Positions 4,382 to 61,592 are shown, numbered from the stretch's first letter. The stretch is 64,000 bases of DNA from Hyalangium minutum (GCF_000737315.1 NZ_JMCB01000034.1:62001-126000), one strand, 5' to 3'. Notes: a model not told the origin generated them from the letters alone. Numbers and translations are program-made.

Positions 4382-4384
4382 GGG

Positions 4385-17950: not shown

Positions 17951-17959
17951 GCGCGCCCC

Positions 17960-33154: not shown

Positions 33155-33171
33155 GACTCCGATCTCAAGTG

Positions 33172-36100
33172 CTAGCGAGGGAGCGAATGCGCGTCCAACC
33201 ATTGCGAGACCTGCTTCGCATCGGAGGCGCGGCGCTGGCGGCTCCAGAACTCTCGGGCTTGAGAGGCCAGTTCCACGGCGCGCGGCCTCTCCCCTCCTCC
33301 ATCCCATAGCGCCCGGGCCAGCGGAAATTGGACTCGCGCTCGCCTCGCCACGGGCGCAACCGCCAGCGCCCGCTCCAGCCACGGCCGGGCCTCCACCGGG
33401 CTCCCCTCCGCGAGCAGGAGCTTGCCCATCCCCAGCAAGGGGCCGAACCGCTCTGGATGGTCTGGCGGCAGCACCTTCTCCTGCAGCTCGATGGCGCGCG
33501 TGTACTTCTCTCGCGCCTCCGCGCCGCGGCCGAGATCTCTCAGCGCATCTCCCACGCTGCTCAACGAGAGAGCCACATCCGGGTTGTCGGGCCCCAGGGC
33601 CTTCAGCCGCACGGCCAGGGCGCGTTCCCCCAGCTGCCTGGCTTCCTCATACCTCCCCATCATGTCCAGGAGGCTGCTGAGGTTCGCGAGCAGCGTGGCG
33701 ACGCGTGGGTGCTCGGCTCCGAGCATCTTCTCCCGGAGCATCAGCGCCCGGGTGTGCATCTGATGCGCCTCTTCGTAGCGCCCCAGCTCCCCGAGAGCGA
33801 GGCCCAGGCTGGCGAGCGAGATGGCCACGCTCGGGTGCTCCGGGCCCAGCACCTTCTCTCGGATCGCCAGCTCGCGCGCGAAGGCGGCTCGCGCCTCTTC
33901 GGATCGCCCCAGCTCCATGAGAGCGTTCCCCAGGATGTTGAGCGAGGAGGCCACGGCCCGGTGGTCGGGCCCCAGCAGCTTCTCCCGGATCGCCAGCCCT
34001 CGCACGAGGGGGGCTCGCGCCTCTTCAAATCGGCCCAGATTCAGGAGGGAGAGCCCCAGATTGTTGAGCGCAACGGCGACGTCCGGGTGCTCGGAGCCGA
34101 GCGCCTTTTCCTGGATCGCCAGCGCCCGCGCGGCGGCCGCGTGCGCTTCCTCGTACCGGCCCAGATCCCCGAGAACGAGCCCCAGGTTGTTGAGCGAGGA
34201 GGCCACGGCCGGGTGCTCGGGGCCCAGCGTCTTCTCTCGGAGCACGAGCCCACGGGCGAAGGCGGCGCGCGCCTCTTCATGGCGGCCCAGATCCCAGAGC
34301 TCCGCGCCCAGGCTGTTGAGCGCGGCCGCCACGCTCGGATGCTCGGGACCCAGCACCTTCTCCCGGATCGCCAGCACGCGCTCAGCCATCTGGCGCGCCT
34401 TCTCGTATTGGCCCTGCTTGCTGAACACGATGGCCAGATCGCTCAAGGAGCTGGCCACCTCCGGGTGCTCGGGGCCCAGCACCTTCTCCCTGAGCGCCAG
34501 CGCGGCCTCGCACTCTCGTAGGGCTTCGTCATACCGGCCCAGCTCGATCAGCACGAGGCCGAGATTGGTGAGCGCAGAGGCGCGGATCCGGTCATCATCC
34601 GCCAGATCCACGAACTGCTCCACCGTGGGCCGCAGCGACAGCGCCTCTTGCAGGCGCCCCATGTGATAGCCCACCACCGAGACCCGTGCGCTCCAAGCTC
34701 GGGCCAGCGTCGCCATGTCCTTGCCCCGCGCCGCCGCGGTCATCGTCTGATGGAGCCGCTCCTCCGCCCCCTTGTAGTCGCCCGCCTCGCTGCGCAGCTG
34801 GGCCGACAGCAACAACGTGCGCGCCAGCAACGGCGCGTACCCCACCGGCTCTACCTGCGGCACCAGCTCATCCGCTCGCGCCACTCCCTGCTTGAACTTG
34901 CCGGCCGCCAGCAGCACCTCCAGTCGGTCCACCTGCTCCTGCAACGCGTCGACTCTCGCGCGCACCGTGGGCTCTTCGGGCGGGGGCACCGCCGCCGTCA
35001 GCGCCTTGGCATCCATGCAGTACTCCAAAGGCGGCAGCGCCTGCACCGCCTGCACCGCCTTGCCCACCAACTCCTCATCCGGCGCCTGCGTCAGCAGCTC
35101 CGTCAGCGCTCTGAGCTGGCTGCGCCGCCTCTCCAGGCACATCTCCTCGCGCACCCACAAGCTCTCCGCTCTCGCCTCTCCCTCTCGACTCACTCCCAGG
35201 CACACCTCGGTGCGCTGCTTCACCCACCTCCCAGCGTACGCCTCCAGCCCCTTCACCACTCGCTCCGCCGTCTCCGGCGCGTACGGCAGACCTGTCGCCA
35301 CCAGCGCCTGCCTCACCTTCTGCTTCACTGCCTCGTCCCACACACCCGCAAGGTGATGCCCCAACCCGTCGCACGGCTGCTGCCGGTCCGCCCAGCCCCA
35401 CACCGCCAGCACACCCAACAACACCGTTACGCTCGTCACAGCCCCCTTCCTCACACGCTCGCGACTCTTCACCTCGGGGTCCGCCGACAGCGCCTTCAAC
35501 ACCTCTCCCATCGACGACGGACGGCGCTCCGGCTCGCTCTGCAAACCTCGCAGCACCGTGCGCGCCACCCACGCTGGCACCGCTGCTCCCTCCGGCACTC
35601 GCGCCTTCCCCGCTCGCTGCGCCTCCCTCAGCTCAGACACCGTCGCCGCCTCATACGGCACCCTTCCGTAAAGCCCCTCGTACAGCGATACGCAGAATGC
35701 ATACAGGTCGCTGCGCGCGTCTTCCCTCTTCCCTTGGAACTGCTCCTCCGCCATGTAGGCGGGTGTTCCCATCCACCTCTCCCCACCCCGCGTCAGCGGC
35801 GCTATCACTCCCGTGGCCGCTGGCAACGGCGACAGCCCTGGCTCCTCACTCTCGAGGGCCACGGGGCCCAGCCTCGCCAGCCCGAAGTCCGTCACTCGTG
35901 CGCGCCCATCCGCTCCCACCAGCACGTTGTCGGGCTTGAAGTCATGATGGATCAGCCCTGCCTCGTGCGCCGCCGCCAGCCCTCGTCCTGCCGCAAGGTA
36001 CTGCCTCAGCACCTCCTTCCACCCTCGGCCCTGCTGCCACTGGCGCAGCGTCTGCCCCTCCACGTGCTCCATCGCGATGAACAGCGTCCCGTCCTCCAGC

Positions 36101-36508
36101 CGCCCCGCGTCGTACACACCCACCACGTTCGAATGGCTCAGCCGTGCCATCGCCTGAGCCTCACGCAGGAAGCGGCCTTGCTCCTCGTCCACCCGCGCGT
36201 TGGCTCCGCTCCAGGCTCGCAGCAGCTTGAGCGCCACGCGCCGGTCCAGCCGTGCGTCGTACGCCGAGAGCACCACTCCCATGGAGCCCTGGCCCAGCTG
36301 CTTCAGCACCGTGTACCGGCCCAGCATCGTCTGCCCAGGTTGCGGCAGGGTGGGCGGCACGACCTCCTCCTCCGGCGCCTCGTACGGCCACGTGCCCACC
36401 CCCTCCTCCCGATCCCCTGGGGTGGAGTCCGGATCGCCACCCGCGGCCACCACCTCATCGCTGAGAGAGCCACCGCGTTCCTTCTCTGGCTGCTCGCCTT
36501 CGCTCATG
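33172..36508 (-). CDS. Ser/Thr protein kinase with TM segment and C-terminal TPR array
   Basis: GQGSMG, VALK, HHDFKPDN, DFG, GTPAYM; TM (VTVLLGVLAVWGW); nine 42-aa 'LGPEHPxVAxSL' TPR units. Confidence 0.93.
33420..34560 (-). repeat. Intragenic 126-bp (42-aa) TPR tandem repeats
   Basis: Nine units of REKxLGPEHPxVAxSLxxLG counted in the translation; boundaries approximate. Confidence 0.8.
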
Positions 36509-36552
36509 GCCCTCTCTCCGACCGCAAGCCGCAGCCGCAGGCTCACCCTCGC

Positions 36553-37914
<1,362 letters not shown>

Positions 37915-37993
37915 CGAAAACTACCACCCCAGGTCAACACAAGAGAACAGCCTCCACTCCAACAAGAAAGACTCAGAACCACTGAATTCACCT

Positions 37994-38027
37994 GCCTCGC
38001 TCGCTCGGCTGGAGCAGCGAGCGAGGC
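37994..38027 (-). terminator. Hairpin terminator after the RCC1 gene
   Basis: Perfect 12-bp stem GCCTCGCTCGCT (37994-38005) / AGCGAGCGAGGC (38016-38027), 18 nt past the RCC1 stop. Confidence 0.6.
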
Positions 38028-38045
38028 CCCCCCACTGTCGGAGCA

Positions 38046-40667
38046 TCACCCTCCGATAAGACCGACTCCACCACCGGGAGGAACGAAGATGCTCCCGTCG
38101 CCCGGCAGAGCCGTGACCTGCGTGGGGCTCGACCGGTTGGTGGTCGTCCCCTCTCCGAGCTGGCCGTAGCTGTTGTAGCCGCAGGACCGGACGATGGCGC
38201 CCTTGTCCAGCGCCATCGTGTGATGGTGGCCACCAGAAGAGAGGTCCACGATAGAGCTCAAGAGGGTCGCCGCCGGCGCCGTGCGGTTGGTGGTCGTCCC
38301 ATCACAGAGCTGGCCATAGGTGTTGTAGCCCCAGCCCGACACGGTCCCATCCCTCCTCAAGGCCAACGTGGAGTAGCTCCTCGCGACGATTGCGATGACA
38401 TCGCCGAGGCTCAGGACCTGCACCGGCGACGAGCGGTTGGTGGTCGTCCCGTCTCCGAGCTGGCCGTAGTAGTTGTAACCCCAGGCCCTCACCGTGCCGC
38501 TCGTGGCCAGCGCCATCGTGTGGTACATGCCCGCAGAGACAGCGGCGATGCTGGGGAGTCCGGGGACCTGCACCGGCGACAGGCAGTCGGTGGTCGCTCC
38601 GTTGCCCAGCTGGCCGTAGGAGTTGTAGCCCCAGGTCCACACAGTGCCGTCCGCCTTCAGTGCCACCGTGTGGTAGATGCCCGCAGCGATGGAGATCACA
38701 CCGTTGAGGCCAGGGACCTGCGTCGGCGAGGAGCGAGAGATGTTCGTTCCGTTTCCGAGCTGGCCGTAGCCGTTGTAGCCCCAGGTCCACACGGTGCCGT
38801 CTGCCTTGAGCGCCACCGTGTGGTAGCCTCCGGGGGAGACCGCGATGACGCCCTCCAACCCGGGCACGAGCTGCGGCGTGGGGCTGTTGGTGGTCGTCCC
38901 GTTGCCCAGCTGGCCGTAGCCGTTGTAGCCCCAGGTCCACACGGTGCCGTCATCCTTCAGCACGACCGTGTGGTGGGTGCCCACCTCCGCGTCGACGACG
39001 CCGCTCATCCCCGTCAGCAGTGCAGGCGTGAGCCTGTTGGTGGTCGTCCCGTCGCCCAGCTGGCCGTAGGAGTTGTAGCCCCAGGTCCACAGCGCCCCGC
39101 CCTTCCCCACGGCCACCGAGTGGGCAGTGCCGCCAGCCGTCGAGACGATCCCGCTGACCACGACGGCCACGGGCGAGAGGCGCTGGGAGACGGTCCCATC
39201 TCCCAGCTGGCCGTAGTAGTTGTAGCCCCAGCCAAACAGGGTGTGAGGGTTCGTCACGACCAGCTGGCGCTTCTGGGCCACTGTGTGAGTGGCACCCGCG
39301 CCGAACATCTTGACGCCGGTCATCCCCGGGACCTGCACCGGCGTGGCGGAAGTGGTGGTGCTCCCGATTCCCAGCTGTCCGTTGTAGTTGGAACCCCAGG
39401 CATACAAGGTGCCATCCTGCCGCTTGGCCACGGAGTGGAAGGCGCCGGCGGCGATCTCGACGGCTTGGGTGAGGCCCGACACCTGCACCGGGAAGACGCT
39501 GTCGACGGTGGTCCCATTTCCCAGCTGGCCGTAGGAGTTGGAGCCCCAGCTCCACGCGGTGCCGTCGCTCTTCACGCTGACCGTGTGGTAGTAGCCTCCG
39601 GAGAGGGAGCGGACGCCGCTGATGCCCGCCACCTGTACGGGCGTCAACCGGGTGAGGGTGGTCCCGTCCCCCAGCTGCCCGTTGGCGTTGGATCCCCAGG
39701 CCCAAGCGCTTCCGTCCTTCTTCACGGCCACCGTGTGGAGGTAACCCGCGGCGATGCCGAAGACGCCGCTGAGACCGGACACCTGCACGGGCGTCAGGCG
39801 GCTCGTGGTGGTCCCATCCCCGAGCTGGCCGTAGCCGTTGTAACCCCAGGCCCACACGGTCCCGTCCGCCTTCAGCGCCACCGTCCGAGCGTAGAAGGTC
39901 GCCACCGCGACGACGTCGGTCAGGCCGGGCACCTGCCTGGGCACCGCATGGAGCGTGGTGGTGCCATCTCCGAGCTGGCCGCTGGAGTTGTACCCCCAGG
40001 TCCACACGCTCCCATCCTCCGTCACCGCCGCCGAGTGCGTGTCCCCGGCCGACACGGAGACGACGTGGCTCACCCCCCTCACCCTCGTGGGAGAATTGCG
40101 CTGGGTCCTCTCGCCGTTGCCGAGCTGGCCATAGGTGTTGTAGCCCCACCCCCACACAGAGCCGTCCGACTTCACCTCCAGCGTGTGGTTGCCGCCGAGG
40201 CTCAGGCTGGGACAGAACTGGACGACGTTCCGGAACACCGTCTTGGGCAGGTTGTTGCAGTAGCTGCGATTGCCATTGCTGTCGATGATCATCGGGTAGG
40301 CCTTCACCTCGAAGCCGTGCACCCCGCAGCCCACCCCGGCCTCGCTGAAGAACCACTCCCCCGTCTCTCCCACGCGCTCGTCGACCGCATGCAGCGTGCC
40401 GTCGACGTAGTACTCGAGCTTCGCGGCATTGGCCCCATTGATGGCCGTCCAGGTTCCCGCGCCGGCCAGCTCGCCCTCGAAGGAGCTCACGCCTTCCAGC
40501 GAGAGGTCGTCGATGGCCGCCCCCGACGAGCACAGCGCCGACTCCTGGGTCCCCAGCGTCTCCTCCGGGCCGATCCCTCCCTCTTCGGGAGGAGCACCAC
40601 AAGCCGCCAGCAGCACCGAGGCCAATACCGCCAACACATCCGAACGCTTCAGGTCTCTCTTGAGCAT
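38046..40667 (-). CDS. RCC1/BLIP-II repeat lipoprotein with N-terminal Ig-like domain
   Basis: Lipobox LLAAC; 14 'WGxNxxGQLG' repeats; start set at ATG 40667. Confidence 0.9.
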   Translation of the reverse strand: MLKRDLKRSDVLAVLASVLLAACGAPPEEGGIGPEETLGTQESALCSSGAAIDDLSLEGVSSFEGELAGAGTWTAINGANAAKLEYYVDGTLHAVDERVGETGEWFFSEAGVGCGVHGFEVKAYPMIIDSNGNRSYCNNLPKTVFRNVVQFCPSLSLGGNHTLEVKSDGSVWGWGYNTYGQLGNGERTQRNSPTRVRGVSHVVSVSAGDTHSAAVTEDGSVWTWGYNSSGQLGDGTTTLHAVPRQVPGLTDVVAVATFYARTVALKADGTVWAWGYNGYGQLGDGTTTSRLTPVQVSGLSGVFGIAAGYLHTVAVKKDGSAWAWGSNANGQLGDGTTLTRLTPVQVAGISGVRSLSGGYYHTVSVKSDGTAWSWGSNSYGQLGNGTTVDSVFPVQVSGLTQAVEIAAGAFHSVAKRQDGTLYAWGSNYNGQLGIGSTTTSATPVQVPGMTGVKMFGAGATHTVAQKRQLVVTNPHTLFGWGYNYYGQLGDGTVSQRLSPVAVVVSGIVSTAGGTAHSVAVGKGGALWTWGYNSYGQLGDGTTTNRLTPALLTGMSGVVDAEVGTHHTVVLKDDGTVWTWGYNGYGQLGNGTTTNSPTPQLVPGLEGVIAVSPGGYHTVALKADGTVWTWGYNGYGQLGNGTNISRSSPTQVPGLNGVISIAAGIYHTVALKADGTVWTWGYNSYGQLGNGATTDCLSPVQVPGLPSIAAVSAGMYHTMALATSGTVRAWGYNYYGQLGDGTTTNRSSPVQVLSLGDVIAIVARSYSTLALRRDGTVSGWGYNTYGQLCDGTTTNRTAPAATLLSSIVDLSSGGHHHTMALDKGAIVRSCGYNSYGQLGEGTTTNRSSPTQVTALPGDGSIFVPPGGGVGLIGG
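38130..40200 (-). repeat. Intragenic ~150-bp RCC1 tandem repeats (14 units)
   Basis: Recurring plus-strand 'tggccgtag..gttgtagccccag' blocks, each matching one in-frame RCC1 blade. Confidence 0.85.
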
Positions 40668-40680
40668 GGTCTCTCCCCTC

Positions 40681-40696
40681 TGCACTCGCCACGCCA
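40681..40696 (-). promoter_or_regulatory. Candidate sigma54 -24/-12 promoter for the RCC1 gene
   Basis: Minus strand TGGCGTGGCGAGTGCA (GG-N10-GC). Caveat: predicted +1 is only ~3 nt from ATG 40667. Confidence 0.35.
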
Positions 40697-40792
40697 GCCG
40701 TGGCGGCCAACCATGGCTCCCTGCTTTTCCAGCGATTTCCTTGGGTTTCCTATTTACGGGTTTCGCCAGAGAGGGCCTCTGGCGGAGGCCCC

Positions 40793-40844
40793 TGGTCACA
40801 GCAGTAGCCAGGCCCAGGGCAGGCCCTGATCACAGCTGTTATCA
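40793..40844. promoter_or_regulatory. Pair of palindromic upstream boxes (putative bEBP sites)
   Basis: TGGTCAC-AGCA-GTAGCCA (40793-40810) and TGATCAC-AGCT-GTTATCA (40827-40844). Confidence 0.45.
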
Positions 40845-40872
40845 GGCGGGCCCGCCGCACCCGAGCGCGGCC

Positions 40873-42400
40873 TCAGTACTGGCCCTTCAGCGTGGTGGTG
40901 TAGCTGGTGAAGGCGCGGAGTTGGACGAACCAGGTACCCGGAAGCGGGTTGGGCAGGGTGCACGTCTCGTTGTTGCCCTTGCGCAGGGGCCGACACTGGT
41001 AGGCGTACGTCTCTGGCAGCTGGCCATAGCGGACGTAGAGGTCCGCGTCTCCCGTGCCTCCGGAGAGGGTGAAGACCACCGAGGGCCGCCCGGCCGGGAC
41101 CTCCAGCTTGAAGTTCTTCTGGCCGCCGGTGATGTCGGACACACTTGTTGCCACCCCGTTGGCAATGGGCGTGGCCTGGGGGCGCTTGTACAGCAACCGG
41201 TTGGGCGAGGTCGTGTCAAAGACATCCAGCTGCACCTGATCCACGCTCGCATCGGCGATCAAGCGAGCAGGGATGCCGGCGGGCAAGACGCCCTGGGACA
41301 GAAGGATGGCCGCCAAGCCGCTCACGTGAGGTGTGGCGAACGAGGTCCCCTCGACGTTCGTCCAGGCCTCGTCACTGAACATCGCCGCGGATTTGATGTT
41401 CGCACCGGGAGCCCAGAGGTCCAGACATTCTCCAAAGTTGGATCCATTGAAGCCGCTCGACCAGCGCGTCTGCGCCTCGTCGATCGCGCCCACGGTCAAG
41501 ATGCGCTCCCGGAACGGGTGGGTGGCGTCCGGCTGGAGACGGGCCGGCGAGCAGGTGCAGGCGTTCAGGCCGGCATTCCCCGCTGCGACCACCAGGACGA
41601 GCCCGGGATTGCTCGCCATGACATCCGCGGCCGCATCGAGCGGTGCGAACGGGCTCGTGGTGGTGAAGCTCAGGTTGACGATGGCCGGCGTGACGGCGTT
41701 GTTCGCCACCCACTCCATCGCTTGCACCAGCCCATCAACCGTCGCCTCGCCCAACTGGTTGAACGCCTTGACCGAGTTCAAACGGACCTTCTTGGCGACA
41801 CCGTACGTCTTGCCTCCAATGATCCCCGCCACGGCGGTACCATGCCCGGAGAAGTCATCCCCGAACTCCGTGGTGTTGTTGAACGCGACCTGGGCGCGCC
41901 CTTCGAACTCCGAGTGCGATGCCCGGATGCCCGTGTCGATGATGTAGACGTTGACGCCCGTCGCGTCTTCGGCCTGGTAGCTGTTGCTCAGCGGCAGCCG
42001 CTCCTGGTCGATCCGATCCAGGTTCCAAGGCGCTGGAGACTGGACGCCCGACACCCTGACGATGCCGTTCTCCTGGACGTACTCCACCTGGGGATCCTCG
42101 GCCAGCGCCCGAGCCTGCTCCTCGTTGGCGGAGATGAGGAAGCCGCGAAAGGCGGTCTCGTGGGTGGTGAGGACACGTGCGCCGTACGGCTTGGCCAGCG
42201 CATCTGCCCTCAGCGCCATGCTCATCAGACCCCGTGCGGGCTTCTCCTTGAGGACGACGAGGTACTCGCCCTTCACGGGCTCCGGGGACCTCACCAGCTT
42301 GCCCTGCTCCGGCACCCGAGGTGGCGCAGCGAGCGCCCCCATCGAGGTCAGGACGAGACACGCGGTGATCAACCTGCTCCAGCTCTTCATGCTTGGCATC
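40873..42400 (-). CDS. Secreted S8 subtilisin-like serine protease (I9 propeptide, C-terminal PPC domain)
   Basis: IIDTG, GHGTAVAG, GTSFATPHV triad; PPC 'LSGGTGDADLYVRYG...GTWFVQL'. Confidence 0.95.
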
Positions 42401-42424
42401 TGTTCTCTCTTTTCAATCATTGGG

Positions 42425-43213
42425 TCAGGGAGCTGCGGCACGGCGCACCTGTGCTTGAAGGCTCAGCTCCTGCTCCTTCACGAGCCGGCGCTGGTTGTGC
42501 GCAGCGATGTACTGCAACAGCTTCTCGAGCGAGGTCCCCTTCGCGGCTTCGACCAGGGCACGAGCTCTCTCGGGCTCTTGATCCGCGAAGATCTCGTAGA
42601 GCTCCATTCGGGTCGCGGCCATCGAGCGCCTGGCGCTCAATGACAGCTCCGGGCTGAAGGAGTCCGCCAGGATGATGCCTTCGACGGTGGACACCCACTG
42701 CTCGCGAGCGGGGTTCTGTCTCCAGGCCAATGCCTCGCGCAGGTAGTCGATCCGCATCAGGCGCTTGATGCTGGACTCCAGGGACTCCTCGGCTTCTGTC
42801 GAGGAGCCCAGCGTCCGGCGCAGCTGCTCATACATCCGCGTGTCGGCGAGCAGCGCCTCGTAGTCCTTCCGTCCATTGGAATCGAGGAGGATGTGCTCGC
42901 GGAAGTAATCGAACCGCGCCAGCTCCGGCTCCGTCTTGAAGAGCTTCGCCTTCATCACGTCGGTCGCCGTGGTGAACTCGCCGTGCTCCCCTTCCTCTCC
43001 TGGAACCTCCTCGGGCGCCGCGAGCAGGGCGGGGGGAGGAGGCACGGCGGGCCGCTCCGGCACCGCGACACGAGCCGGTGCCGGAGGAGTGTTCTCCCCC
43101 CTCACCGGGGCAGCCCTGATGAAGGCGGAGTCCTCTGGGCTGTCCAGCGCCGCGACGATGAACGCCAGCGCCACGAGCCCCGCAATGACAAACAGATACC
43201 GGCTGATCTTCAT
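42425..43213 (-). CDS. Membrane-anchored helical hypothetical protein
   Basis: N-terminal TM, Pro-rich linker, helical domain; 21-24 nt gaps to both neighbours on the same strand. Confidence 0.75.
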   Translation of the reverse strand: MKISRYLFVIAGLVALAFIVAALDSPEDSAFIRAAPVRGENTPPAPARVAVPERPAVPPPPALLAAPEEVPGEEGEHGEFTTATDVMKAKLFKTEPELARFDYFREHILLDSNGRKDYEALLADTRMYEQLRRTLGSSTEAEESLESSIKRLMRIDYLREALAWRQNPAREQWVSTVEGIILADSFSPELSLSARRSMAATRMELYEIFADQEPERARALVEAAKGTSLEKLLQYIAAHNQRRLVKEQELSLQAQVRRAAAP

Positions 43214-43234
43214 GGGATCTCGGCCTACGTCTGG

Positions 43235-44329
43235 CTAAGGGATGACGTCGGTGGGCACGCCATAGAGGATGATGCGGTTGATGTAGCGCACCTCGTCGTT
43301 CTGGAACCGCACGGAGCCCACCAGATAGCCCTGAGCCACGAGGATGTTGGACACCAGATCCGTCGACACTGGCGCGATGTTGTAGACCTTCCCGAAGTAG
43401 GTGGTCCTCTGAATGTCCACGATGGGATCCAGGGTGCCATCCGCCTTCACCAGCTCGTCGCCCACCTTGAGGGTCTGCGCCTGCACGATGCGGCCCTCGC
43501 CGTTGATGACAGGATGCTCGAGGGTGATGCTGAGCCGGCCGCCAGACTGGGTGGTGATGATGCAGAGCTTCTGCTCCGCATCGCGGAGCTCTCGCGTGTA
43601 GCTATAGGTGCTGTTCTGGTGCAGCCGCAGGTTGTCGAGCGTGGAGTCCGGGGTCAGCGTGATCAGGTCATCGCGCAGTGAGTTCATCGCGTCGAGGATG
43701 GGCACCTCTCCGCTGGAGAAGAGGATCTTCTGCTCGGGGGTGTAGCAAGCCGCCTCGCAGTAGCCGTTCACATGGGAGGGAGTGAAGACCGGCTGGGTGC
43801 TCTCCTTATCGAGATAGAACATGCAGTCCTCGAGATTTTTGTGAGGGAAGAGCTGGATGTTGTCCTCGGAGGTGATGTCCGACGAGGTGCTGAAGGTGGG
43901 GTAGAGCTGACGCCCCTTCCTCCGCCACGAGTCCCGCGACCACTGGAAGTAACCGTTGAGATCCGTCGTCTGGTAGGTGGGGCCCGACAGGTACAGGGCC
44001 ATCATGGCGGAGGTGTTCATCTTGAAGAGGTAGTCCGGGCCCGTGAACGCGCCCTCACCCTCCGGGTTCTTCTCCGGATCGGCCTCCAGATAGTCCTTCA
44101 GCGTCCCGCCCCCCGCGGCAGCCTGGCCCGTGTTGAAGAAGGCTGCCGGATCCCCGACGTTCTGGAGCGTCCCGCACTTGCGAGCCCACTCGACTCGAGC
44201 CGCCGCCGCCGCATTCGTACTCAGGCTGTCGACAGTGCATCGAGCCGTGAGGATGGGCTGCGCGAGCACCTGCATCGGCAACAGCGCCCCCACCGCCAAG
44301 GCGATGGCACCCCAGATTCTATTGAACAT
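43235..44329 (-). CDS. Secreted protein with C-terminal Hint autoprocessing domain
   Basis: Signal peptide; Hint block A C195-YTPEQKI, block B 'SITLEHPV', 'LKVGDELV', block F 'KVYNI...NILVAQGYLVGS'; 25-aa tail. Confidence 0.88.
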   Translation of the reverse strand: MFNRIWGAIALAVGALLPMQVLAQPILTARCTVDSLSTNAAAAARVEWARKCGTLQNVGDPAAFFNTGQAAAGGGTLKDYLEADPEKNPEGEGAFTGPDYLFKMNTSAMMALYLSGPTYQTTDLNGYFQWSRDSWRRKGRQLYPTFSTSSDITSEDNIQLFPHKNLEDCMFYLDKESTQPVFTPSHVNGYCEAACYTPEQKILFSSGEVPILDAMNSLRDDLITLTPDSTLDNLRLHQNSTYSYTRELRDAEQKLCIITTQSGGRLSITLEHPVINGEGRIVQAQTLKVGDELVKADGTLDPIVDIQRTTYFGKVYNIAPVSTDLVSNILVAQGYLVGSVRFQNDEVRYINRIILYGVPTDVIP

Positions 44330-44389
44330 TCAAACCCTCGCTTGTTCGTGCCGCACCATGCGGCACGGGAATCAGTGACAGGCGCTCCG

Positions 44390-46444
44390 CTACGGAGAGG
44401 AGCGCGGAAGGGAGCCGCCAGTCGTGGGCATGGCGACGAAGCTCGCGGCCGCCTTCCGGAGATCCGGGTTCGGATCGTGCTCGCTGGCCCAGGCCAGCAG
44501 GGGCAGCGCCTCCGGCACGGCCGCGCGCTGCTCTCCGAGGAGGTGGATCACGTCGACCCGGACTCCGTTGGTGGGATCCATGCGCAGCGCCTGCGCCAGA
44601 GCGGGGAGCAGGGGCGCCAAGGGCCGGAAGCCGCTGGCGAAGACGGCGACCCGCCGGACCTCGGGGGCGGGATCCTTGAGCATGAACTCGGACAGGAGCT
44701 GGTCGGCGCGGGGATCCGGGATGACGCGCAGCGCCTCGAGGGCGGCCTGGCGAATCTGGGGATCCGCGGATCGGAGCGCATCCTCGAACGTGCTCAGCGC
44801 GTCCGGCGAGCGGGTGTTGCCCAGGGTCCGCAGCGCCAGCGCCTGCTGCTCCGCATTGGAGGCCGTGCTGTACTCGCTGTTGAGCTCGTGGACGAGGGCC
44901 TCCGTACCCTTCGCGTCCGTGTCGGAGAGCTGGAAGGCGGCATTGCCGAGCGCCAGCTTCGCCGTGTCCCGGAGCATCCCGTCCGCGTCGTTCCTCGCGC
45001 CACGCAGGGCGTCCAGGCCCTCGCGGGTGGGGTCCTTCGCCACTCCCAGCGCGGCCACCGCGTCCATGCGGATGTCCGTGGGAATGGACTGATCGCCGCA
45101 GACCTCCGCCAGGGACTGGATGGCCTCGCGGGTGCTGGCCGCGGAGAGCGCGCCGAGCATGGGGCTGGCAGCGATCGGATCCATCCCCGCGCGAATGATG
45201 CCGGGGACCTTGAGGGCCTCGGAGGGGTGGAGCATGAAGAGGGCGCGGAGCTGCTCCAAGGCCTGGGTGCGGGCATCATCCTTGGCCTGGGGATCTTCCG
45301 GGAGCGAGCGCAGCTCCTTGACCAGGGTGTCGAAGTCCTTGCCCTTCAGCACCTGGCGGTACTGCTCCATCGGGTCCTGCTCCATGCCCTGGAAGGCCGC
45401 CATGGAGGCGGTGCTCAGAGAGGCCCGGCGCGCCATGAAAGTGCCGATCAGCGTCGGATCCGGGCGGCGCTCCAGCAGGCTCAGGCTCAGGGACGACTCA
45501 TACGTGGTGGGAGGCATGGCCTGGCCCGCCTCCATCTCCACCCGCTCCCGCCCCTCGAGCGAGCGCGCCCAGAGATCGCGCTCCAGCTCGAAGGTGCTCG
45601 AGGCGCTCACGGTGATGTGGATCTGGCCAGTCAGAGGCTCGAGCCCCAACGGGGACGCCACGTGGGAGTAGGACTCCTTGCGCTTCTCGAAGCGGCCGGA
45701 GGCCAGGCGCTGATACACGGCATGGTAGCGGCCCGTGGTGTCGTACTCCTCGGCGCTCCAGGTGGCGCCCGGCACACCAGCCACGACGAACTGCGAACTC
45801 GCCACGACTCCCCGGAGGATGTTTCGCACGAGCGGATCCGTCGCCTGCTCGAAGTGCGTGAACGTCGCCAGACCGGTCTTGTCGTACGTGAGGAAGAAGG
45901 GAAGCTGAAGGGCTGCGGACAGGCTGCGCTGGACGTCGGGGGCCAGGGGGCCCGCGCCGCCAACGTCCACCGTCAGCGAGGAGAGCTTGATGTTCACCCG
46001 GGCATCGACGCGCTCGGCGTCGACAGAGACGACACCCACGTTCCACTCGCCCCGGAGGTTGAACCTCATCGAGGGCAGCGCCTGCGCGCCAGGCTGTGCC
46101 GGGCGAAAGGTGAGCTTCTGATCAGCGCTCAGGGAGTACCGGTAGAGCATCCCAGGGGTCCACGCGCGAGTTCCCGTGGAGGGCTTGGAGGACACGGCCG
46201 GGGCCGGCGCCGACGGGCCTCCGGCCGAAGGGGCTGCAGCCTGAGAGGACTGCGATTCCTGGGAGGGAGCCTCCGCAGAGGACGGGGACGCAAGCGCCCA
46301 CAGCCCCAGGAGACTGACAGCCAGGAGCGCGAGCGTCACCCCGAAGAGGACGCGTGCGCGCTGACCCGCCAGGAGGCCTCCTGGGGTCGACGCCTGTCCC
46401 ACGACAGCGATTGGCTTGCTGCTCACGTTGCCCGACTTCCGCAT
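44390..46444 (-). CDS. HEAT-repeat protein with vitellogenin/MTP-like N-terminal beta module
   Basis: 'LPFFLTYDKTG...RNILRGVVASSQF...EEYDTTGRYHAVY' then alpha-helical repeats incl. 'ALRTLGNTRSP'; N-terminal TM/signal. Start 46444 or 46588. Confidence 0.75.
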   Translation of the reverse strand: MRKSGNVSSKPIAVVGQASTPGGLLAGQRARVLFGVTLALLAVSLLGLWALASPSSAEAPSQESQSSQAAAPSAGGPSAPAPAVSSKPSTGTRAWTPGMLYRYSLSADQKLTFRPAQPGAQALPSMRFNLRGEWNVGVVSVDAERVDARVNIKLSSLTVDVGGAGPLAPDVQRSLSAALQLPFFLTYDKTGLATFTHFEQATDPLVRNILRGVVASSQFVVAGVPGATWSAEEYDTTGRYHAVYQRLASGRFEKRKESYSHVASPLGLEPLTGQIHITVSASSTFELERDLWARSLEGRERVEMEAGQAMPPTTYESSLSLSLLERRPDPTLIGTFMARRASLSTASMAAFQGMEQDPMEQYRQVLKGKDFDTLVKELRSLPEDPQAKDDARTQALEQLRALFMLHPSEALKVPGIIRAGMDPIAASPMLGALSAASTREAIQSLAEVCGDQSIPTDIRMDAVAALGVAKDPTREGLDALRGARNDADGMLRDTAKLALGNAAFQLSDTDAKGTEALVHELNSEYSTASNAEQQALALRTLGNTRSPDALSTFEDALRSADPQIRQAALEALRVIPDPRADQLLSEFMLKDPAPEVRRVAVFASGFRPLAPLLPALAQALRMDPTNGVRVDVIHLLGEQRAAVPEALPLLAWASEHDPNPDLRKAAASFVAMPTTGGSLPRSSP

Positions 46445-46606
46445 GGGGGTGCTCCGAGTTGGCGGCTCTTGCCGCTTCAGTTTCAGTTCTGGTTTAGAGG
46501 GCGGGTGCCGCATCCTCAGCCGATCGCTCGACCGAGGAGACAGCACCCGGTTCATCCCGCCTGGCGACAGCCAATGCCTCTCGGGCACGGCCGTCGCGTG
46601 GCGGTA

Positions 46607-47791
46607 TCAGCCGCAGCCCAGGCTCGACATGGTGCCGCTGGAGTTGGCCAGGTTGAGGACCTTGGAGATGCCGGGCCAGTTGGCGATGGTGACGTTCCAG
46701 GTCTTCTTGAAGAAGAGGAAGTTGACCTTCACGAAGGCCTGCAGCGAGCCCTTGAGCGCGCTCAGGTTGAGGTCAGCCTTGAGGGACCAACTGGGCGAGC
46801 AGAGGGTCCAGCCGAGGCTGGCCGCGGCCTGCGCGGTGGCGTTGATCAGGGACAGGGAGCCGGACACGCCGAAGCTGGCGATGGCGACGTTCACCGCAGC
46901 GGAGGCCACCACGTTGGCCCAGCCGCCGGCGTAGGAGGTGATCGCGGCCAGCGCGGGGCTCACCTGGCCGTTCAAGCCCATCTTCACGCCACCGGTCAGC
47001 TGCGACTTCACGGTGACCGGCACGGGGCCGACCATGAACGACTTGGAGACGGAGAAGAACGAGCGGCTCCAGTTGATGGGGGTGGGCGCGAAGGTCCCAG
47101 CGAGGTTGGCGCTCCAGATCTGCGAGCCCAGGGCGTACAGCGCGGCGGTGCCGCTGTTGCAGCCGCCCTGCTGCCCACAGACGTACGAGCGGCCGCGGAC
47201 CAGCTCTTTCTCCGTGTTGAAGGCGGTGCCAAAGAGCCGGCCCTCGGCGAGCGCCTCTTCCTTCTTCGCCACGGTGCCGTTCGCCGGCGTCGCGGTGACG
47301 GAGGTGTTGACGTTGTAGCCCGCACCGAAGATGGAGTTACCGAACCGCTCCGTGCGCTGGTAGTAGACACTGACGGGAGTGACCGCCATCTGCCCGATGA
47401 GCTTCAGCCCGGCCCCGGTCTGCGTCGGCGGCGTCTCGGACGGAGGCGGCACGTTCGGCGTGCTGGCCTCGGGGATGGTGGCCTGGAGGTAGTTCACGTT
47501 CCGCCGGCCATCGTTGATGTCGAGGAGAATGGGCGCGTTGAGCAGCTGCGCCTCGTTGTTGACGACCGCGTCCTGCTCGGGCGGCGTGTAGGTCGCGTTC
47601 GCGTCGAATGGGAGGACCTGCGTCTCCCAGGGGATCCTGTTGTCGAGCTGCGTGTTGGACGGGTAGATGGTGTACGGGTACTTCACGCTGTCGACGACAT
47701 AGGGATTCGGGTCCTGGTAATCCTGCGCGGACGCGACGGTTGCGACGGTGACTGCCACAAGCGCGAATGCGCGCGATACTGCCTTCATCAT
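46607..47791 (-). CDS. Secreted beta-rich hypothetical protein
   Basis: Signal peptide MMKAVSRAFALVAVTVATVASA-Q with GAGGGG RBS; alternating amphipathic strands in the C-terminal half. Confidence 0.8.
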   Translation of the reverse strand: MMKAVSRAFALVAVTVATVASAQDYQDPNPYVVDSVKYPYTIYPSNTQLDNRIPWETQVLPFDANATYTPPEQDAVVNNEAQLLNAPILLDINDGRRNVNYLQATIPEASTPNVPPPSETPPTQTGAGLKLIGQMAVTPVSVYYQRTERFGNSIFGAGYNVNTSVTATPANGTVAKKEEALAEGRLFGTAFNTEKELVRGRSYVCGQQGGCNSGTAALYALGSQIWSANLAGTFAPTPINWSRSFFSVSKSFMVGPVPVTVKSQLTGGVKMGLNGQVSPALAAITSYAGGWANVVASAAVNVAIASFGVSGSLSLINATAQAAASLGWTLCSPSWSLKADLNLSALKGSLQAFVKVNFLFFKKTWNVTIANWPGISKVLNLANSSGTMSSLGCG

Positions 47792-47830
47792 GTTGAGCCC
47801 CTCATTGCGTGGAACGGCTCGCAGCCCTGG

Positions 47831-47846
47831 TGCACGGGGCGAGCCA
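47831..47846 (-). promoter_or_regulatory. Candidate sigma54 -24/-12 promoter of the five-gene secreted operon
   Basis: Minus strand TGGCTCGCCCCGTGCA (2 mismatches to TGGCACG-N4-TTGCA); predicted +1 ~29 nt before ATG 47791. Confidence 0.55.
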
Positions 47847-47923
47847 CCCAAGAGGGGTTGGCCTTCTTTCATCGATCTACCGTGATTTCACGGGGTTACG
47901 GTTCTCCAGGGAATACAGGAATC

Positions 47924-47995
47924 CGGCAACAACCGTTATCACTGATAACTCACATGCCCTGGGAGTGGCTCGTGGCCTGGTAACGCGCGTTATCA
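47924..47995. promoter_or_regulatory. Palindromic upstream boxes (putative bEBP sites)
   Basis: CGGCAAC-AACC-GTTATCA (47924-47941), perfect GTTATCA-C-TGATAAC (47935-47949), TGGTAAC-GCGC-GTTATCA (47978-47995). Confidence 0.5.
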
Positions 47996-48099
47996 GGGTC
48001 GCTCGCGGAGCCGCTGCCCCGCTGAGGACGCGCTCGCGCCTGGGCGACTTGAGCCCCTGGGAGTATGAGCGGGGCGCCCTACCTGCTGAGCCGAGTTCG

Positions 48100-48206
48100 G
48101 GCTGGCGCTCGAAACGTAGGCTACCCGCTGCCCACGAGATCGAACATCTGGCCCACGCCCTTGGCGCGCGCCACTTCGTAGAGCGCTCGCGCCAGCGCCA
48201 CGTCCT
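48100..48206. repeat. 107-bp direct copy of 51489-51595 (ocd 3' end plus tip of convergent gene)
   Basis: Aligned by eye at offset 3389: one mismatch (48175 T vs 51564 C); joined directly to the truncated fumA. Confidence 0.92.
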
Positions 48207-49601
<1,395 letters not shown>

Positions 49602-51509: not shown

Positions 51510-52472
51510 CTACCCGCTGCCCACGAGATCGAACATCTGGCCCACGCCCTTGGCGCGCGCCACCTCGTAGAGCGCTCGCGCCAGCGCCACGTCCTGCACC
51601 GCCAGCCCCGTCGAGTCGAAGATCGTGATCTCGTCCCCCTGGCGCCCTTTCCTCTTCCCCGCCACCACCTCACCCAGCGTGCCTGCGATCTGCTCCTTCT
51701 TCAGCTGACCGTCGTGCAGCGGCACGTTCACCTCACCCGAGTGCAGCGCCTGCTCCTCGTCGTCGATGAAGATCCGCCCCGCTTGCAGGATGCTCGCCTC
51801 CAGTTCCTGCTTGCCCGGCGCGTCCGCTCCCATCGCGTTGATGTGCGCCCCCGCCTTCACCCACTCTCGCTTCACCACCGGCGAGCGCACCGGCGTCGAC
51901 GTGCACACGATGTCCGCTCCCGACGCCTCCTGCAGGCTCACCACCCGCCCGCCTTTCTCCTTCTGCAGCGCCTGCGCCGCCGCCTCCGACGCGTCCGCCA
52001 GCAGCAGCTCGAGCCCCTCGAACAGCGCCCGGTGCGCGTCGATCAGCACCCGCGCCTGCACCCCGCACCCCACCAGCCCCAGCGTCCGAGGCTTCGCCCG
52101 CGCCAGGTACTTCGATGCCACGCCCCCCGCTGCACCCGTCCGCCACGCCGTCAGCAGCGTGCCGTCCATGATCGCCAGCGGCGACGCCGTCTCCGGATCA
52201 CTCAGCACGTACACCGCGCGCACCGTCGGCAGCTGGTGCTTCTCCGGGTTGCGAGGATGCGCGTTCACCCACTTCACTCCCGCCGCCCCATCCAGGAACG
52301 CCGGCATCGCCCGGAAGTCCCCGTCGTACTTCGGCAGCGAGAGGTACACCTTCGGAGGCATCAGCGCCTCGCCCAGCCCGTGCGCCTTGAAGGCTCGCTC
52401 CACGGCGTTCAGCCCCAGGTCCACGGTGTACAGGTTGCGGAGATCGTTCGCGCTCAGCAGGAGGGTTGGCAT
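51510..52472 (-). CDS. Ornithine cyclodeaminase / mu-crystallin (alanine dehydrogenase-like) protein
   Basis: DFRAMPA, RTGAAGG, GCGVQA, HINAMGAD, FDSTGLAVQDVA. Confidence 0.92.
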   Translation of the reverse strand: MPTLLLSANDLRNLYTVDLGLNAVERAFKAHGLGEALMPPKVYLSLPKYDGDFRAMPAFLDGAAGVKWVNAHPRNPEKHQLPTVRAVYVLSDPETASPLAIMDGTLLTAWRTGAAGGVASKYLARAKPRTLGLVGCGVQARVLIDAHRALFEGLELLLADASEAAAQALQKEKGGRVVSLQEASGADIVCTSTPVRSPVVKREWVKAGAHINAMGADAPGKQELEASILQAGRIFIDDEEQALHSGEVNVPLHDGQLKKEQIAGTLGEVVAGKRKGRQGDEITIFDSTGLAVQDVALARALYEVARAKGVGQMFDLVGSG

Positions 52473-52560
52473 GCGGCGCCTTATACCGGGCCCCATCCCC
52501 ACCGGAAACGATGGCTCTTATTCCGAGATAATCCTCCGAATCTCAATTTCCGGAGTTTCC

Positions 52561-53865
52561 ATGAGCCGCGCCTCCCTCTTCCTCACCCTGGCCCTCGCCG
52601 CCTCTCTCACCCGCTGTGCGCCCCCGGACTCCGAGCCGGAACAGGCCCCCACTCCCGCCGAGAGCACCCAGGCCCTCACCCCCGGTGGCGGTCTTCGGCT
52701 CATGACCTACAACATCAAGCACGGAGAGGTGAGCAGCCTCGACGCCATCGCCAACGTCATCAAGGGCCAGGGTCCGGACCTCGTCGCGCTCCAGGAGGTG
52801 GACAGCCTCACCCACCGCTCGGGCAAGGTGGATCAGGCCGCGCGGCTCGGGCAGCTCACCGGCATGTACGCGTCGTTCGTGCCCTCGCTCCTCAGCTATG
52901 ACGGAGGCCAGTACGGGCTCACGCTCCTGTCCCGCTACCCCATCCGCTCCTCGACGCGCATCCCCCTGCGCTCCGCCGCCGAGCAGCGCATCCTCGCCCT
53001 CTATGAGGTGGAGCTGGACGCCCAGCACATCCTCCCCGTGGGCGTCACCCACTTCGGCACCGTCGACGCCACCGAGCGCCTCAATCAGGCCGCCGACGTC
53101 AAGGCCGCCCTCACCGGCAAGCCCTGGGCGCTGCTCGGCGGCGACTTCAACGCCTCGCCCTCCGAGTCCGGCATCACCAGCCTGCTCCAGCTCCTCACCG
53201 ACGCGTGGGCCCGCGGCGGCTCGGGCAGCGGCTACACCAGTTCCGCCAGCTTCCCCACCCGCCGCATCGACTACCTGATGCTCGGCTCCGCATGGACCTC
53301 GCCCGTGACGGCCCGCGTCGTCAGCGCGTCCTCGCAGTCGGATCACCTCCCCGTCGTCGCCACCCTCATCCTGCCCTGGAGCCAGACCCTGCTGGGCGAT
53401 CGCGTCCCCGGCACCGCCGTCCAGGCCGACACCAAGGCCGTCGAGGTGGGCGTCCGCTTCCGCAGCAACGTCCCCGGCACCATCACGGCCCTCCGCTTCT
53501 ACCGAGGCACCCGGAACGCCAGCGGCTACGTGGCCCGCCTGTGGACCAGCGCCGGCACCCTGCTCGCCCAGGTCCCCGTCACCGATGGCGCCATCCCCGG
53601 CTGGCAGGAGGTGGCACTCCCCTCGCCCGTCGCCATCTCCGCCAACACCCTGTACGTGGTCTCCTACTACTCCTCGAACGGGCAGTTCGCGCGGGACGTC
53701 GACGGCCTGCTGAACGCCATCGTCAGCGGCAACCTCACCGCCCCCAGCAGCGCCAGCGTGGGCGGCAATGGCATCTACGTCTACGCCACCGGCGGCGGCT
53801 TCCCCACGGCCTCCTACAAGAACACCAACTACTGGGTGGACGTCCGCTTCGTGCCCTCTCCGTAA
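52561..53865 (+). CDS. Lipoprotein: endonuclease/exonuclease/phosphatase domain fused to DUF4082-like domain
   Basis: MTYNIKHG, LQEVD, GDFN, RIDY, SDH; then 'VEVGVRFRS..PGTITALRFY...NYWVDVRF'. Confidence 0.85.
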   Translation: MSRASLFLTLALAASLTRCAPPDSEPEQAPTPAESTQALTPGGGLRLMTYNIKHGEVSSLDAIANVIKGQGPDLVALQEVDSLTHRSGKVDQAARLGQLTGMYASFVPSLLSYDGGQYGLTLLSRYPIRSSTRIPLRSAAEQRILALYEVELDAQHILPVGVTHFGTVDATERLNQAADVKAALTGKPWALLGGDFNASPSESGITSLLQLLTDAWARGGSGSGYTSSASFPTRRIDYLMLGSAWTSPVTARVVSASSQSDHLPVVATLILPWSQTLLGDRVPGTAVQADTKAVEVGVRFRSNVPGTITALRFYRGTRNASGYVARLWTSAGTLLAQVPVTDGAIPGWQEVALPSPVAISANTLYVVSYYSSNGQFARDVDGLLNAIVSGNLTAPSSASVGGNGIYVYATGGGFPTASYKNTNYWVDVRFVPSP

Positions 53866-61440: not shown

Positions 61441-61592
61441 GGCGGGGAAGCGTACCTGCCCTCGCGCTCCGTGGCACTCCGGGACAATTCTCTGGCACGC
61501 CCCGGCAATGATGAGCCGCCGCGTTTTTCCCATCATGGCCGCGAGCTGAACGGGTGATGGACACCCGGCTTCCAGCTTCTCACGGAGGAGTC

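Follow-up and report, generated by a model that had tools for sequence, protein, structure and literature searches.

Within a 64,000-nucleotide stretch of the Hyalangium minutum genome (GCF_000737315.1 NZ_JMCB01000034.1:62001-126000, referred to as the window), five minus-strand genes for exported proteins, gA to gE, share one orientation and span positions 40873-47791. The first two genes probably encode a split bacterial member of the large lipid transfer proteins (LLTPs), the group that includes MTP and vitellogenin. Judged by its structural model, gB is a genuine LLTP (MTP/vitellogenin) N-terminal fold, and the model of gA indicates that this protein probably supplies the lipid-cavity sheets (C-sheet and A-sheet) in trans to gB. 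The most solid new point is an LLTP fold split over two bacterial genes; the in-trans cavity lies beyond what an earlier note on this DNA had seen. The reading of the whole as a sigma-54-controlled envelope operon, composed of two conserved two-gene modules (gA/gB and gC/gD) and a protease (gE), is one that we hold with even confidence. No earlier description seems to exist of the combination, of gD as its partner gene, of the regulatory layout or of the island structure. The earlier note had made the same statement about the combination, and no paper on it was found in the literature.

At the GC content of the window (66-71%), lists of open reading frames (ORFs) are rich in artefacts, and the true frames were chosen by GC content at third codon positions (GC3). 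GC3 values of 0.84-0.91 pick out gA to gE as real minus-strand genes:

46607-47791, minus strand: gA, 394 aa from a conserved ATGATG start (ORF reaches 47872)
44390-46444, minus strand: gB, 684 aa (ORF reaches 46588)
43235-44329, minus strand: gC, 364 aa
42425-43213, minus strand: gD, 262 aa
40873-42441, minus strand: gE, 522 aa

By the same choice of frame, every real gene between 33172 and 47872 is on the minus strand. A plus-strand ORF of 1403 aa (43772-47983) was rejected as a spurious high-GC artefact, with a GC3 of 0.63 and the wrong GC3 pattern. Transcription proceeds from gA through gE to gF, gG and a kinase gene, and the gaps from gA to gE measure 18-162, 60, 21 and -17 to +34 nt, varying with the choice of start codon. 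The closest relatives are proteins of Hyalangium species, at 83-86% identity. The earlier note had described five co-oriented exported or membrane genes with short gaps, and both GC3 and the ORF reading agree. Its five labels were also right: gA is beta-rich with a signal peptide, gB is a Vitellogenin_N/HEAT protein, gC a Hint protein, gD an anchored helical protein and gE a subtilisin. Its boundaries hold for these five genes, but the unit is bigger and also contains an RCC1 lipoprotein, an FHA-sigma-54 activator and a Ser/Thr kinase.

gB and gA as a candidate split LLTP

At the sequence level, gB matches Pfam Vitellogenin_N (PF01347; 2.7e-13, 49.8 bits against a cut-off of 24) over profile positions 302-582, which cover the helical half only, and it also matches HEAT_2. 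PF01347 is carried by all of the ~60 close relatives of gB. A phmmer comparison of gB with lipovitellin (1lsh) gave 0.0027. The profile built from close relatives matched designed HEAT repeats far better than lipovitellin. With distant members added, the profile matched lipovitellin 1lsh (6.5e-10) and MTP (3.5e-4) at collinear coordinates, and these two matches emerge only once such members are included.

The AlphaFold2 model of gB, made from 47 homologues, has a predicted local distance difference test score (pLDDT) of 84, and between residues 90 and 674 most positions exceed 90. A transmembrane helix (residues 29-46) and ~45 disordered linker residues lead into a region rich in strands (99-347), and helical repeats make up the last domain (360-671). 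The strand-rich region holds two helices (169-179 and 204-217), mostly with a pLDDT above 90. In a Foldseek comparison with the PDB, ranks 1-10 were all LLTPs, including MTP (6i7s, 1.8e-20), lipovitellin (1lsh, 3.8e-16), honey-bee vitellogenin and apoB100. These alignments run over ~640 columns and include the barrel, whereas generic HEAT/ARM proteins start at 6e-9 over ~350 columns. [quoted passage not shown] The modeled chain ends with the helical domain and does not carry the cavity C- and A-sheets. The vitellogenin/MTP-like HEAT protein of the earlier note is therefore real as regards its LLTP N-terminal fold, but gB alone is without the lipid-cavity sheets.

The barrel is itself the mark of a large family. 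When the barrel domain alone (256 aa) was searched against 1.84 billion representatives, it retrieved 437 clusters at 50% identity with E-values of 1e-3 or lower. Nearly all of the best 150 matches are 580-667 aa long with the barrel at residues ~60-320, and no long eukaryote-type protein was among these 150. Named members of the gB family are all Myxococcota; the rest are unnamed metagenome sequences. In databases, gB relatives go by "HEAT repeat protein"; in one UniRef entry, the name is "Vitellogenin domain-containing protein". The literature search turned up no paper that deals with bacterial LLTPs, nor any that mentions these locus tags.

At 2747-4729, three loci from the TARA marine metagenome (L041-L043) encode P0181, a gB-like protein that is only remotely related (19-21% identity, faint PF01347). 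It lies next to a zinc-finger gene of the DksA/TraR kind and to large genes with no annotation, and tblastn did not find a gA-like gene there.

gA is beta-rich and carries a signal peptide. It had no match in Pfam or NCBIfam, nor by sequence in the PDB, where a search with the gA family profile stayed empty even at an E-value of 10. The AlphaFold2 model from 40 homologues (pLDDT 84, predicted template modeling score 0.72) contains, in order, the signal peptide, one helix, ~8 shorter strands (8-16 residues each) and a set of six antiparallel strands that are 16-27 residues long. A Cys pair conserved in the gA family (C331/C393) lies near the C-terminus. Among 350,542 chains, the top three Foldseek matches of gA were MTP (6i7s_G and 6i7s_H) and lipovitellin (1lsh), with E-values of 0.012-0.029 and probabilities of 0.57-0.80; MTP 8eoj was at rank 8, and no chain at all matched below an E-value of 1e-3. 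It is very unlikely that gA and gB both match the same few LLTP structures by chance. The C-terminal lipid-binding domain of MTP consists of two six-stranded sheets, first the C-sheet and then the A-sheet, whose strands are double the length; a C-terminal disulfide braces the domain (PMC6717300). The strand pattern and Cys pair of gA fit this domain and agree with gA as the proposed cavity-sheet subunit.

Wherever the flank of a gB locus is long enough to include the neighboring gene, that gene is gA, and both gene orders occur. This adjacency persists to 27-30% identity: on metagenome contigs, a gA homologue of 27% identity sits 30 nt upstream of a 610-aa TPR_Vitellogenin/HEAT_2 gene.

We also considered gA as an outer-membrane barrel and rejected that assignment. 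Foldseek probabilities for outer-membrane proteins and autotransporters were at most 0.07, compared with 0.57-0.80 for the LLTPs, and the C-terminus (...LGCG) is non-aromatic.

The Hint protein gC and its neighbors gD and gE

The second module begins with gC, a secreted protein whose Cys-rich N-domain is predicted to be released by cleavage at a C-terminal Hint domain:

44261-44329, minus strand: gC signal peptide
43748-44260, minus strand: N-domain, residues 24-194, Cys-rich secreted domain
43238-43747, minus strand: Hint domain, residues 195-364
43748-43750 and 43745-43747, minus strand: codons of the predicted scissile bond Ala194/Cys195

gC has ~200 relatives, for which the NCBI name is "Hint domain-containing protein"; those with organism names are all Myxococcota, often with several per genome. 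Motifs were called from an alignment of 31 sequences. In the N-domain, C31, C52, C169 and C191 are invariant, and the motifs RCxxDSL...AxxRxEWARxC and NGYCEA(S/A)C stand out. In the Hint domain, the invariant residues are C195 (block A, CYTPEQK), T269 and H272 of the TxxH motif (block B) and VYN (block F). A Glu247/Asp250 pair, 19-22 residues before TxxH, is invariant as well and presumably lies roughly at the place of the Hedgehog general-base Asp. Where inteins carry His-Asn and a nucleophile (block G), gC has LVGS, with Val-Gly in place of His-Asn; a conserved tail of ~25 aa (RFQNDEVxYINR...VIP) follows, and the protein ends. Because the Hint domain has neither His-Asn nor a C-extein, splicing and C-terminal cleavage are ruled out, and only N-terminal cleavage is possible. 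That gC cleaves itself at Cys195 is probable.

Searched against the PDB, the gC family profile matched inteins (2jmz at 2.9e-4, 4e2u and 7qil) and, at an E-value of 0.16, the bacterial intein-like (BIL) domain 2lwy, in each case from block B to block F. The NCBIfam model intein_Nterm aligned to residues 195-274 below its cut-off. For PT-HINT (PF07591), gC scored 17.0 bits against a cut-off of 27.7 (E-value 0.007), and its Hint domain is C-terminal; some family members do exceed the Pfam threshold. No Hedgehog chain was among the PDB matches of the family profile, and similarity to the C-terminal part of Hedgehog (Hh-C) was not detectable. The earlier note had proposed Hedgehog-type autoprocessing. 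The architecture fits, with a Hint fold that has an N-terminal Cys and TxxH, but gC has no sterol-recognition region and no Hh-C similarity, and its nearest sequence matches are inteins and a BIL domain.

The N-domain had no match in Pfam or the PDB, toxin families included. Relative to the gC of the window, it is 82% identical in the nearest relative, where the Hint domain is 93% identical, and at long range the two values are 34% and 60%. Distant members, which include a Bdellovibrio-labelled metagenome-assembled genome (MAG) and low-GC MAGs, keep the end motifs and have shorter or different middles. In other proteins, the N-domain is fused to one or two PPC domains and not to Hint (L009 4791-6122 and 18683-19564; L012 8714-9892; L016 1294-2343; L052 8624-9865), often beside an S8 protease gene. 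Since the N-domain occurs with either Hint or PPC, it is an independent module whose C-terminal appendage is meant for removal.

A family of this description has been noted before. Bürglin (2008) described proteins with a bacterial signal peptide, conserved upstream cysteines, weakly similar N-regions and a C-terminal Hint-like domain (PMC2362128, additional files 16-17), with STIAU_1829, MXAN_6253 and plu1731 as examples. That family has motifs A and B and is distinct from inteins, Hog and BIL; the paper credits its earlier detection to Dassa and Pietrokovski and proposes no function, partner gene or LLTP link (PMC2362128). By description, gC most probably belongs to it, all the listed features being present in gC and its ~200 relatives. 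The gC family was thus already noted, as uncharacterized, in 2008, which weakens the novelty of the Hint part.

In gD, a Pro-rich linker connects an N-terminal transmembrane anchor to a ~170-aa helical domain, which carries the motif W-(K/R)-x-N-P-x-R; the protein had no match in Pfam, NCBIfam or the PDB. Of the 40 genome loci, 25 have gD directly downstream of a Hint gene, and among these are loci in which the Hint domain alone can be aligned. Its identity to the protein in the window runs parallel to that of the N-domain (gD/N-domain 77/76, 54/52, 37/36 and 25/<25%), and the Hint domain is tracked less. We take the "RFDYF" of the window gD to resemble the motif of Lif-type lipase foldases, whose layout of anchor, Pro-rich linker and helical domain is presumably similar. 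We rejected this assignment on the lack of database matches and on the absence of "RFDYF" from distant gD proteins. gE comprises an I9 propeptide (1.4e-5), an S8 domain (1.1e-29) and a PPC domain (6.2e-15) in Pfam. It is a subtilase with intact Asp (IIDTGI), His (GHGTAVAG) and Ser (GTSFATPH) motifs, and it is kept after gD in loci of the Hyalangium, Archangium and Corallococcus types.

Conservation, regulation and mobility of the locus

Five kinds of locus were distinguished when other genomes and contigs were compared:

Type I, gA-gB-gC-gD-gE-gF-gG: the window; Hyalangium L001, L002 and L053; Corallococcus- or Myxococcus-labelled L006, L007, L025 and L054
Type II, gB-gA-gC-gD-(SBBP propeller)-gE: Archangium L003-L005, L009 and L026; H. 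rubrum L052
Type III, gA-Hint-gD and a divergently oriented gB: Cystobacter fuscus L028 and Citreicoccus L033
Type IV, gB-gA and, 3-7 kb off, a Hint-like gene (278 aa) behind an M4 protease gene: Myxococcus/Pyxidicoccus L044-L046 and L055
Type V, gA/gB without Hint: second locus of H. gracile (L047), S. erecta L051 and distant contigs L048-L050

The gA/gB and gC/gD modules are adjacent, in three arrangements, in Hyalangium, Archangium, Corallococcus- or Myxococcus-labelled genomes, Cystobacter and Citreicoccus. In types I-III, the five proteins lose identity in parallel, to ~80% (L002), 70% (L006), 46-69% (L005) and 45-59% (L009), as co-inheritance would lead one to expect. A metagenome scan anchored on gB found three loci only, all of types already known. 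The same five genes do occur together in other genomes, and their arrangement is not due to chance. The five-gene unit of the earlier note recurs across several genera despite changes in order, but it is not obligate, as gA+gB and gC+gD each also occur alone. There are, then, two robust two-gene modules, and their association is recurrent and survives rearrangement without being obligate.

Two further sets of genes were seen in these loci. In Myxococcus and Pyxidicoccus, short proteins of 270-278 aa are encoded after secreted M1 or M4 metalloprotease genes (L044 1573-2385 and 4168-5004; L045 1280-2110; L046 1861-2697 and 4500-5336; L055 3504-4157). When encoded behind an M4 gene, they are Hint-like and have a ~95-aa N-domain; all of the short proteins lie 3-7 kb from gB-gA. 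Secreted beta-propeller genes (SBBP or RCC1) recur beside Hint-gD pairs in different genera (L009 12000-13406 and 16233-17636; L010 2734-4152; L052 15673-18758; L032 6585-8258), and this set includes an RCC1 gene beside the Hint gene of a Bdellovibrio-labelled MAG.

Downstream of gE and upstream of gA, the following genes and candidate regulatory elements were found:

38046-40799, minus strand: gF, RCC1-repeat (beta-propeller) lipoprotein (Pfam RCC1 x14; lipobox LLAAC/G after Met45)
36553-37914, minus strand: gG, FHA-domain sigma-54 enhancer-binding protein (Pfam FHA/Yop-YscD_cpl, Sigma54_activat 5.8e-64, HTH_8)
33172-36546, minus strand: Ser/Thr protein kinase with TPR repeats (Pfam Pkinase 4.3e-31), 6 nt downstream of gG
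47831-47846, minus strand: sigma-54-type -24/-12 element TGGCTCGCCCCGTGCA, 40 nt upstream of the gA ATGATG start
47935-47949, minus strand: palindrome GTTATCAGTGATAAC, candidate activator-binding site, ~90 nt upstream of the -24 element
47989-47995, minus strand: second TGATAAC-type site
47975-47995: second imperfect palindrome CTGATAACGCGCGTTACCAG, ~30 nt upstream of the GTTATCAGTGATAAC site
40681-40696, minus strand: second, weaker sigma-54-like element TGGCGTGGCGAGTGCA before gF, only ~14 nt from the predicted gF ATG (40667)
40838-40844: TGATAAC motif before gF

gF is conserved after gE in gA-first loci, and the gene after gE in Archangium L004 and L005 is an RCC1 gene that runs on the other strand. 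gG is 81-90% identical and syntenic in all gA-first loci with a flank that reaches it, and it is likely the activator of the operon. A kinase homologue of 56% identity lies divergently upstream of gA in L006, L007, L025 and L054; the kinase is a likely input to the FHA domain of gG. The element GGGTGGC[GT]CG-N4-[GC]TGCAC stands at -55 to -57 from the gA ATG in all eight gA-first loci (the window, L001, L002, L053, L006, L007, L025 and L054, which with their near-duplicates amount to ~4 independent lineages). Across the eight, its spacer bases vary, and GG and TGCA are fixed. The palindrome is kept as GTTATCAGTGA(T/C)AAC at the same distance in 8/8 of these loci, and the surrounding non-coding DNA diverges. 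Tandem palindromes of this kind would fit the binding of an oligomeric activator. The second sigma-54-like element is also found in L001 (13598) and L002 (13625). With the sigma-54 sites, gG and the kinase traveling with the cluster, the sequence suggests a regulatory chain from the kinase to the FHA activator gG to the sigma-54 promoter.

The whole block is bracketed by a repeat of a class-I fumarase gene:

31760-33154: left repeat, the 3' part of the intact class-I fumarase gene (31526-33154)
48207-49601, plus strand: right repeat, a 5'-truncated fumarase duplicate without the first 98 codons

The two copies form a direct repeat of 1.4 kb with ~97% DNA identity in register, 98% protein identity and an offset of 16,447 bp. 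They bracket exactly the block from the kinase to gA (33155-48206, 15,052 bp), and the flanks differ in other Hyalangium loci. Given the bracketing repeat and the differing flanks, the eight genes seem to have traveled together in a single segment. The repeat looks like the footprint of a single-crossover (Campbell-type) insertion of circular DNA.

Elsewhere in the window, 14792-19225 encodes an AcrB-family RND efflux pump (1052 aa) and a HlyD-type adaptor. A DUF4785-domain protein (19441-20820) is followed by two genes with no Pfam match (20841-22385 and 22386-23447). An exported Exo_endo_phos and DUF4082 protein is encoded at 51766-53865, and 61554-62183 codes for a small protein whose domain is of the fungal fucose-lectin type; both are unusual secreted proteins.

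Proposed mechanism, rival explanations and known systems

Exported or anchored topology, gene structure, folds, catalytic motifs, synteny and promoter conservation were all obtained by computation, and the mechanism that we propose builds on them. gB would be leashed to the inner membrane by its single transmembrane helix and the flexible linker of ~45 residues, and would carry the half beta-barrel and the helical clamp. gA, exported separately, would bring the short-strand C-sheet and the long-strand A-sheet, the sheets that enclose lipid in MTP. Docked on gB, it would form a tethered periplasmic particle for lipid binding or transfer. After Sec export, the Hint domain of gC would turn the Ala194-Cys195 bond into a thioester (Cys1, Thr269 and His272). 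Because this Hint domain is unable to splice, the thioester would be resolved by an outside nucleophile, freeing the disulfide-bonded N-domain of ~170 aa. gD, in the same membrane, may bind, hold or guard the gC precursor or the N-domain, whose rate of divergence its own rate tracks, and gE may trim, mature or clear the products.

The link that we prefer between the modules, an idea that goes back to the earlier note, is that the lipid module handles a lipid that attacks the thioester (C-terminal lipidation), or else solubilizes or carries the freed fragment. Such coupling is plausible, and physical cooperation of gA/gB with gC/gD is a tentative proposal that we place somewhat below even. That a lipid adduct forms on the gC fragment is speculative and rather unlikely. 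A counterpart of the Hedgehog-lipoprotein system is likewise unlikely as a complete account; here, the gC Hint would pass the N-fragment to a lipid (sterol, glycerolipid or amino-lipid) presented by gA/gB, and the particle would then carry or release the tagged protein as a short-range signal or effector in myxobacterial social behavior.

Several observations weigh against the proposed mechanism. The LLTP matches of gA are weak (E-value ~0.01) and come with the target range unreported, so that gA may be matching the LLTP barrel and not the cavity sheets. For gB, the Foldseek TM-scores are low (0.31-0.33, with a root-mean-square deviation of 15-19 A); on the model, they are attributed to the disordered head and to domain orientation. 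After the Hint domain, where Hedgehog proteins have a sterol- or adduct-recognition region, gC has only ~25 conserved residues. No Hint gene was found within 8-10 kb of gB+gA in L047 and L051, nor on the shorter contigs L048-L050. Conversely, most gC+gD loci (Polyangium, Chondromyces, Corallococcus arrays, M. xanthus) are without gA/gB nearby, and a word-limited gB search returned no gB relative in Polyangium or Chondromyces, where gC+gD are present. Of nine loci found via gB, three have the full cluster, four a distant short Hint-like gene (3-7 kb) and two none. The bare sigma-54 pattern is not above chance in the window, its support coming from cross-locus conservation. Finally, the earlier note had proposed checking for co-occurrence with sterol synthesis; within the window, the 39 proteins scanned included no sterol-synthesis protein, neither a squalene epoxidase nor an oxidosqualene cyclase.

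The two modules may simply be co-housed, with gA/gB performing a periplasmic lipid job of their own (e.g., envelope lipid traffic), the gC Hint acting as a self-removing pro-domain by plain hydrolysis, gD as a chaperone or holder and gE as a maturation protease, the two modules sharing regulation and an exported destination. Each pair does exist without the other, and Hint proteins also adjoin other secreted proteases (M4, S8) and SBBP or RCC1 propellers. Moreover, the N-domains with a cleavable PPC instead of Hint suggest that the C-terminal part needs only removal, and a region of the sterol-recognition type is missing from gC. Independence fits less well with the adjacency of the pairs, which outlasts the gA/gB swap, the inversion of gB and divergence to ~45-50% identity in at least five genera, and with the single putative promoter for all five genes and the very short gaps in gA-first loci. 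We regard independent modules as a serious possibility that nonetheless falls short of probable. The likeness of gB to LLTPs could also reflect shared repeat architecture and not lipid function, with gB a mere HEAT-repeat scaffold and gA an unrelated beta protein. The preference of the close-relative gB profile for designed HEAT repeats over lipovitellin, the low TM-scores of gB and the weak E-values of gA would all agree with this, and in MTP the barrel and the helical domain are chiefly sites of protein binding (PDI, apoB; PMC6717300). Yet the ~640-column LLTP alignments include the barrel and stand 11 orders of magnitude above the best pure-repeat match, the barrel alone defines a 437-cluster family of uniform architecture, and gA independently ranks the same LLTP structures first. 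We judge a mere scaffold improbable.

For gC and gD alone, a secreted toxin-immunity (effector-antidote) pair deserves consideration. The N-domain would be a toxin freed by Hint, as in pretoxin-HINT proteins, gD a periplasm-facing immunity protein, and gA/gB either unrelated or an aid to delivery. Myxobacteria are predators and discriminate kin. There are many paralogues per genome and also tandem arrays, and the gene just downstream is small and encodes an anchored protein; divergence is faster in the N-domain than in Hint (34% vs 60% identity at long range), gD identity follows N-domain identity, and some members exceed the Pfam PT-HINT threshold. The variable part, however, is N-terminal with conserved end motifs and shows no cassette swap, and close orthologues are 76-82% identical in the N-domain. 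Several arrays hold 2-4 Hint genes but one gD, unlike one-to-one immunity, and neither a toxin-family match of the N-domain nor anything specific in PADLOC was found. On balance, we judge a toxin-immunity pair unlikely. An anti-phage defense system was also considered and rejected: PADLOC returned only generic kinase, AAA, subtilase and HEAT matches, with nothing for gA, gC or gD, and all products are exported.

MTP, apoB, vitellogenin and lipophorin, all LLTPs, underlie animal lipoprotein biology, and lipid-modified Hedgehog travels on LLTP particles in animals. In the literature searched, LLTPs are treated as an animal family. A two-gene bacterial LLTP family would be a tractable model for the assembly of the barrel-helix clamp with the lipid sheets; it would bear on the origin of the superfamily and add a new candidate for periplasmic lipid handling. 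If the counterpart of the Hedgehog-lipoprotein system were true, the LLTP fold, thought to be an animal invention, would have arisen as a two-gene bacterial module. The recurrent linkage to Hint opens a long-standing question to testing in a group amenable to genetics, namely whether bacterial C-terminal Hint domains can attach an adduct as Hedgehog does; a negative answer, too, would be of value. A defined way into the regulation is offered by the kinase, the FHA activator and the candidate sigma-54 promoter.

Compared with known LLTPs (MTP 6i7s and 8eoj; lipovitellin/vitellogenin 1lsh and 9ens; apoB100 9bd1 and 9e9r), gB has the same half beta-barrel followed by a two-layer helical domain, at a similar size. 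Both the gA model and MTP have a sheet of short strands, then six strands of roughly double length, and a Cys pair at the C-terminus, and the mature length of gA+gB (~955 aa) is near the 894 aa of MTP-alpha. Unlike LLTPs, gA/gB are bacterial and form two polypeptides, gB sits on a transmembrane helix and disordered linker, and there is no PDI partner gene, vWD or DUF1943; sequence identity is 13-18%, and lipid binding is putative. With Hedgehog/Hog proteins, including the nematode Hedgehog-related ones, gC shares a signal peptide, an N-domain of ~170 aa and a C-terminal Hint domain that starts with Cys, contains TxxH and has no C-terminal splice junction. Hedgehog has a sterol- or adduct-recognition region of 60-70 aa where gC has only its conserved tail of ~25 aa, and the gC N-domain is unrelated to that of Hedgehog, with no conserved His and hence no zinc site. 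BIL and pretoxin-HINT domains are, like gC, secreted bacterial Hint folds that cleave rather than splice, as is predicted for gC. They lie midway along large proteins, upstream of a C-terminal toxin, whereas in gC the Hint domain is C-terminal and the released part N-terminal.

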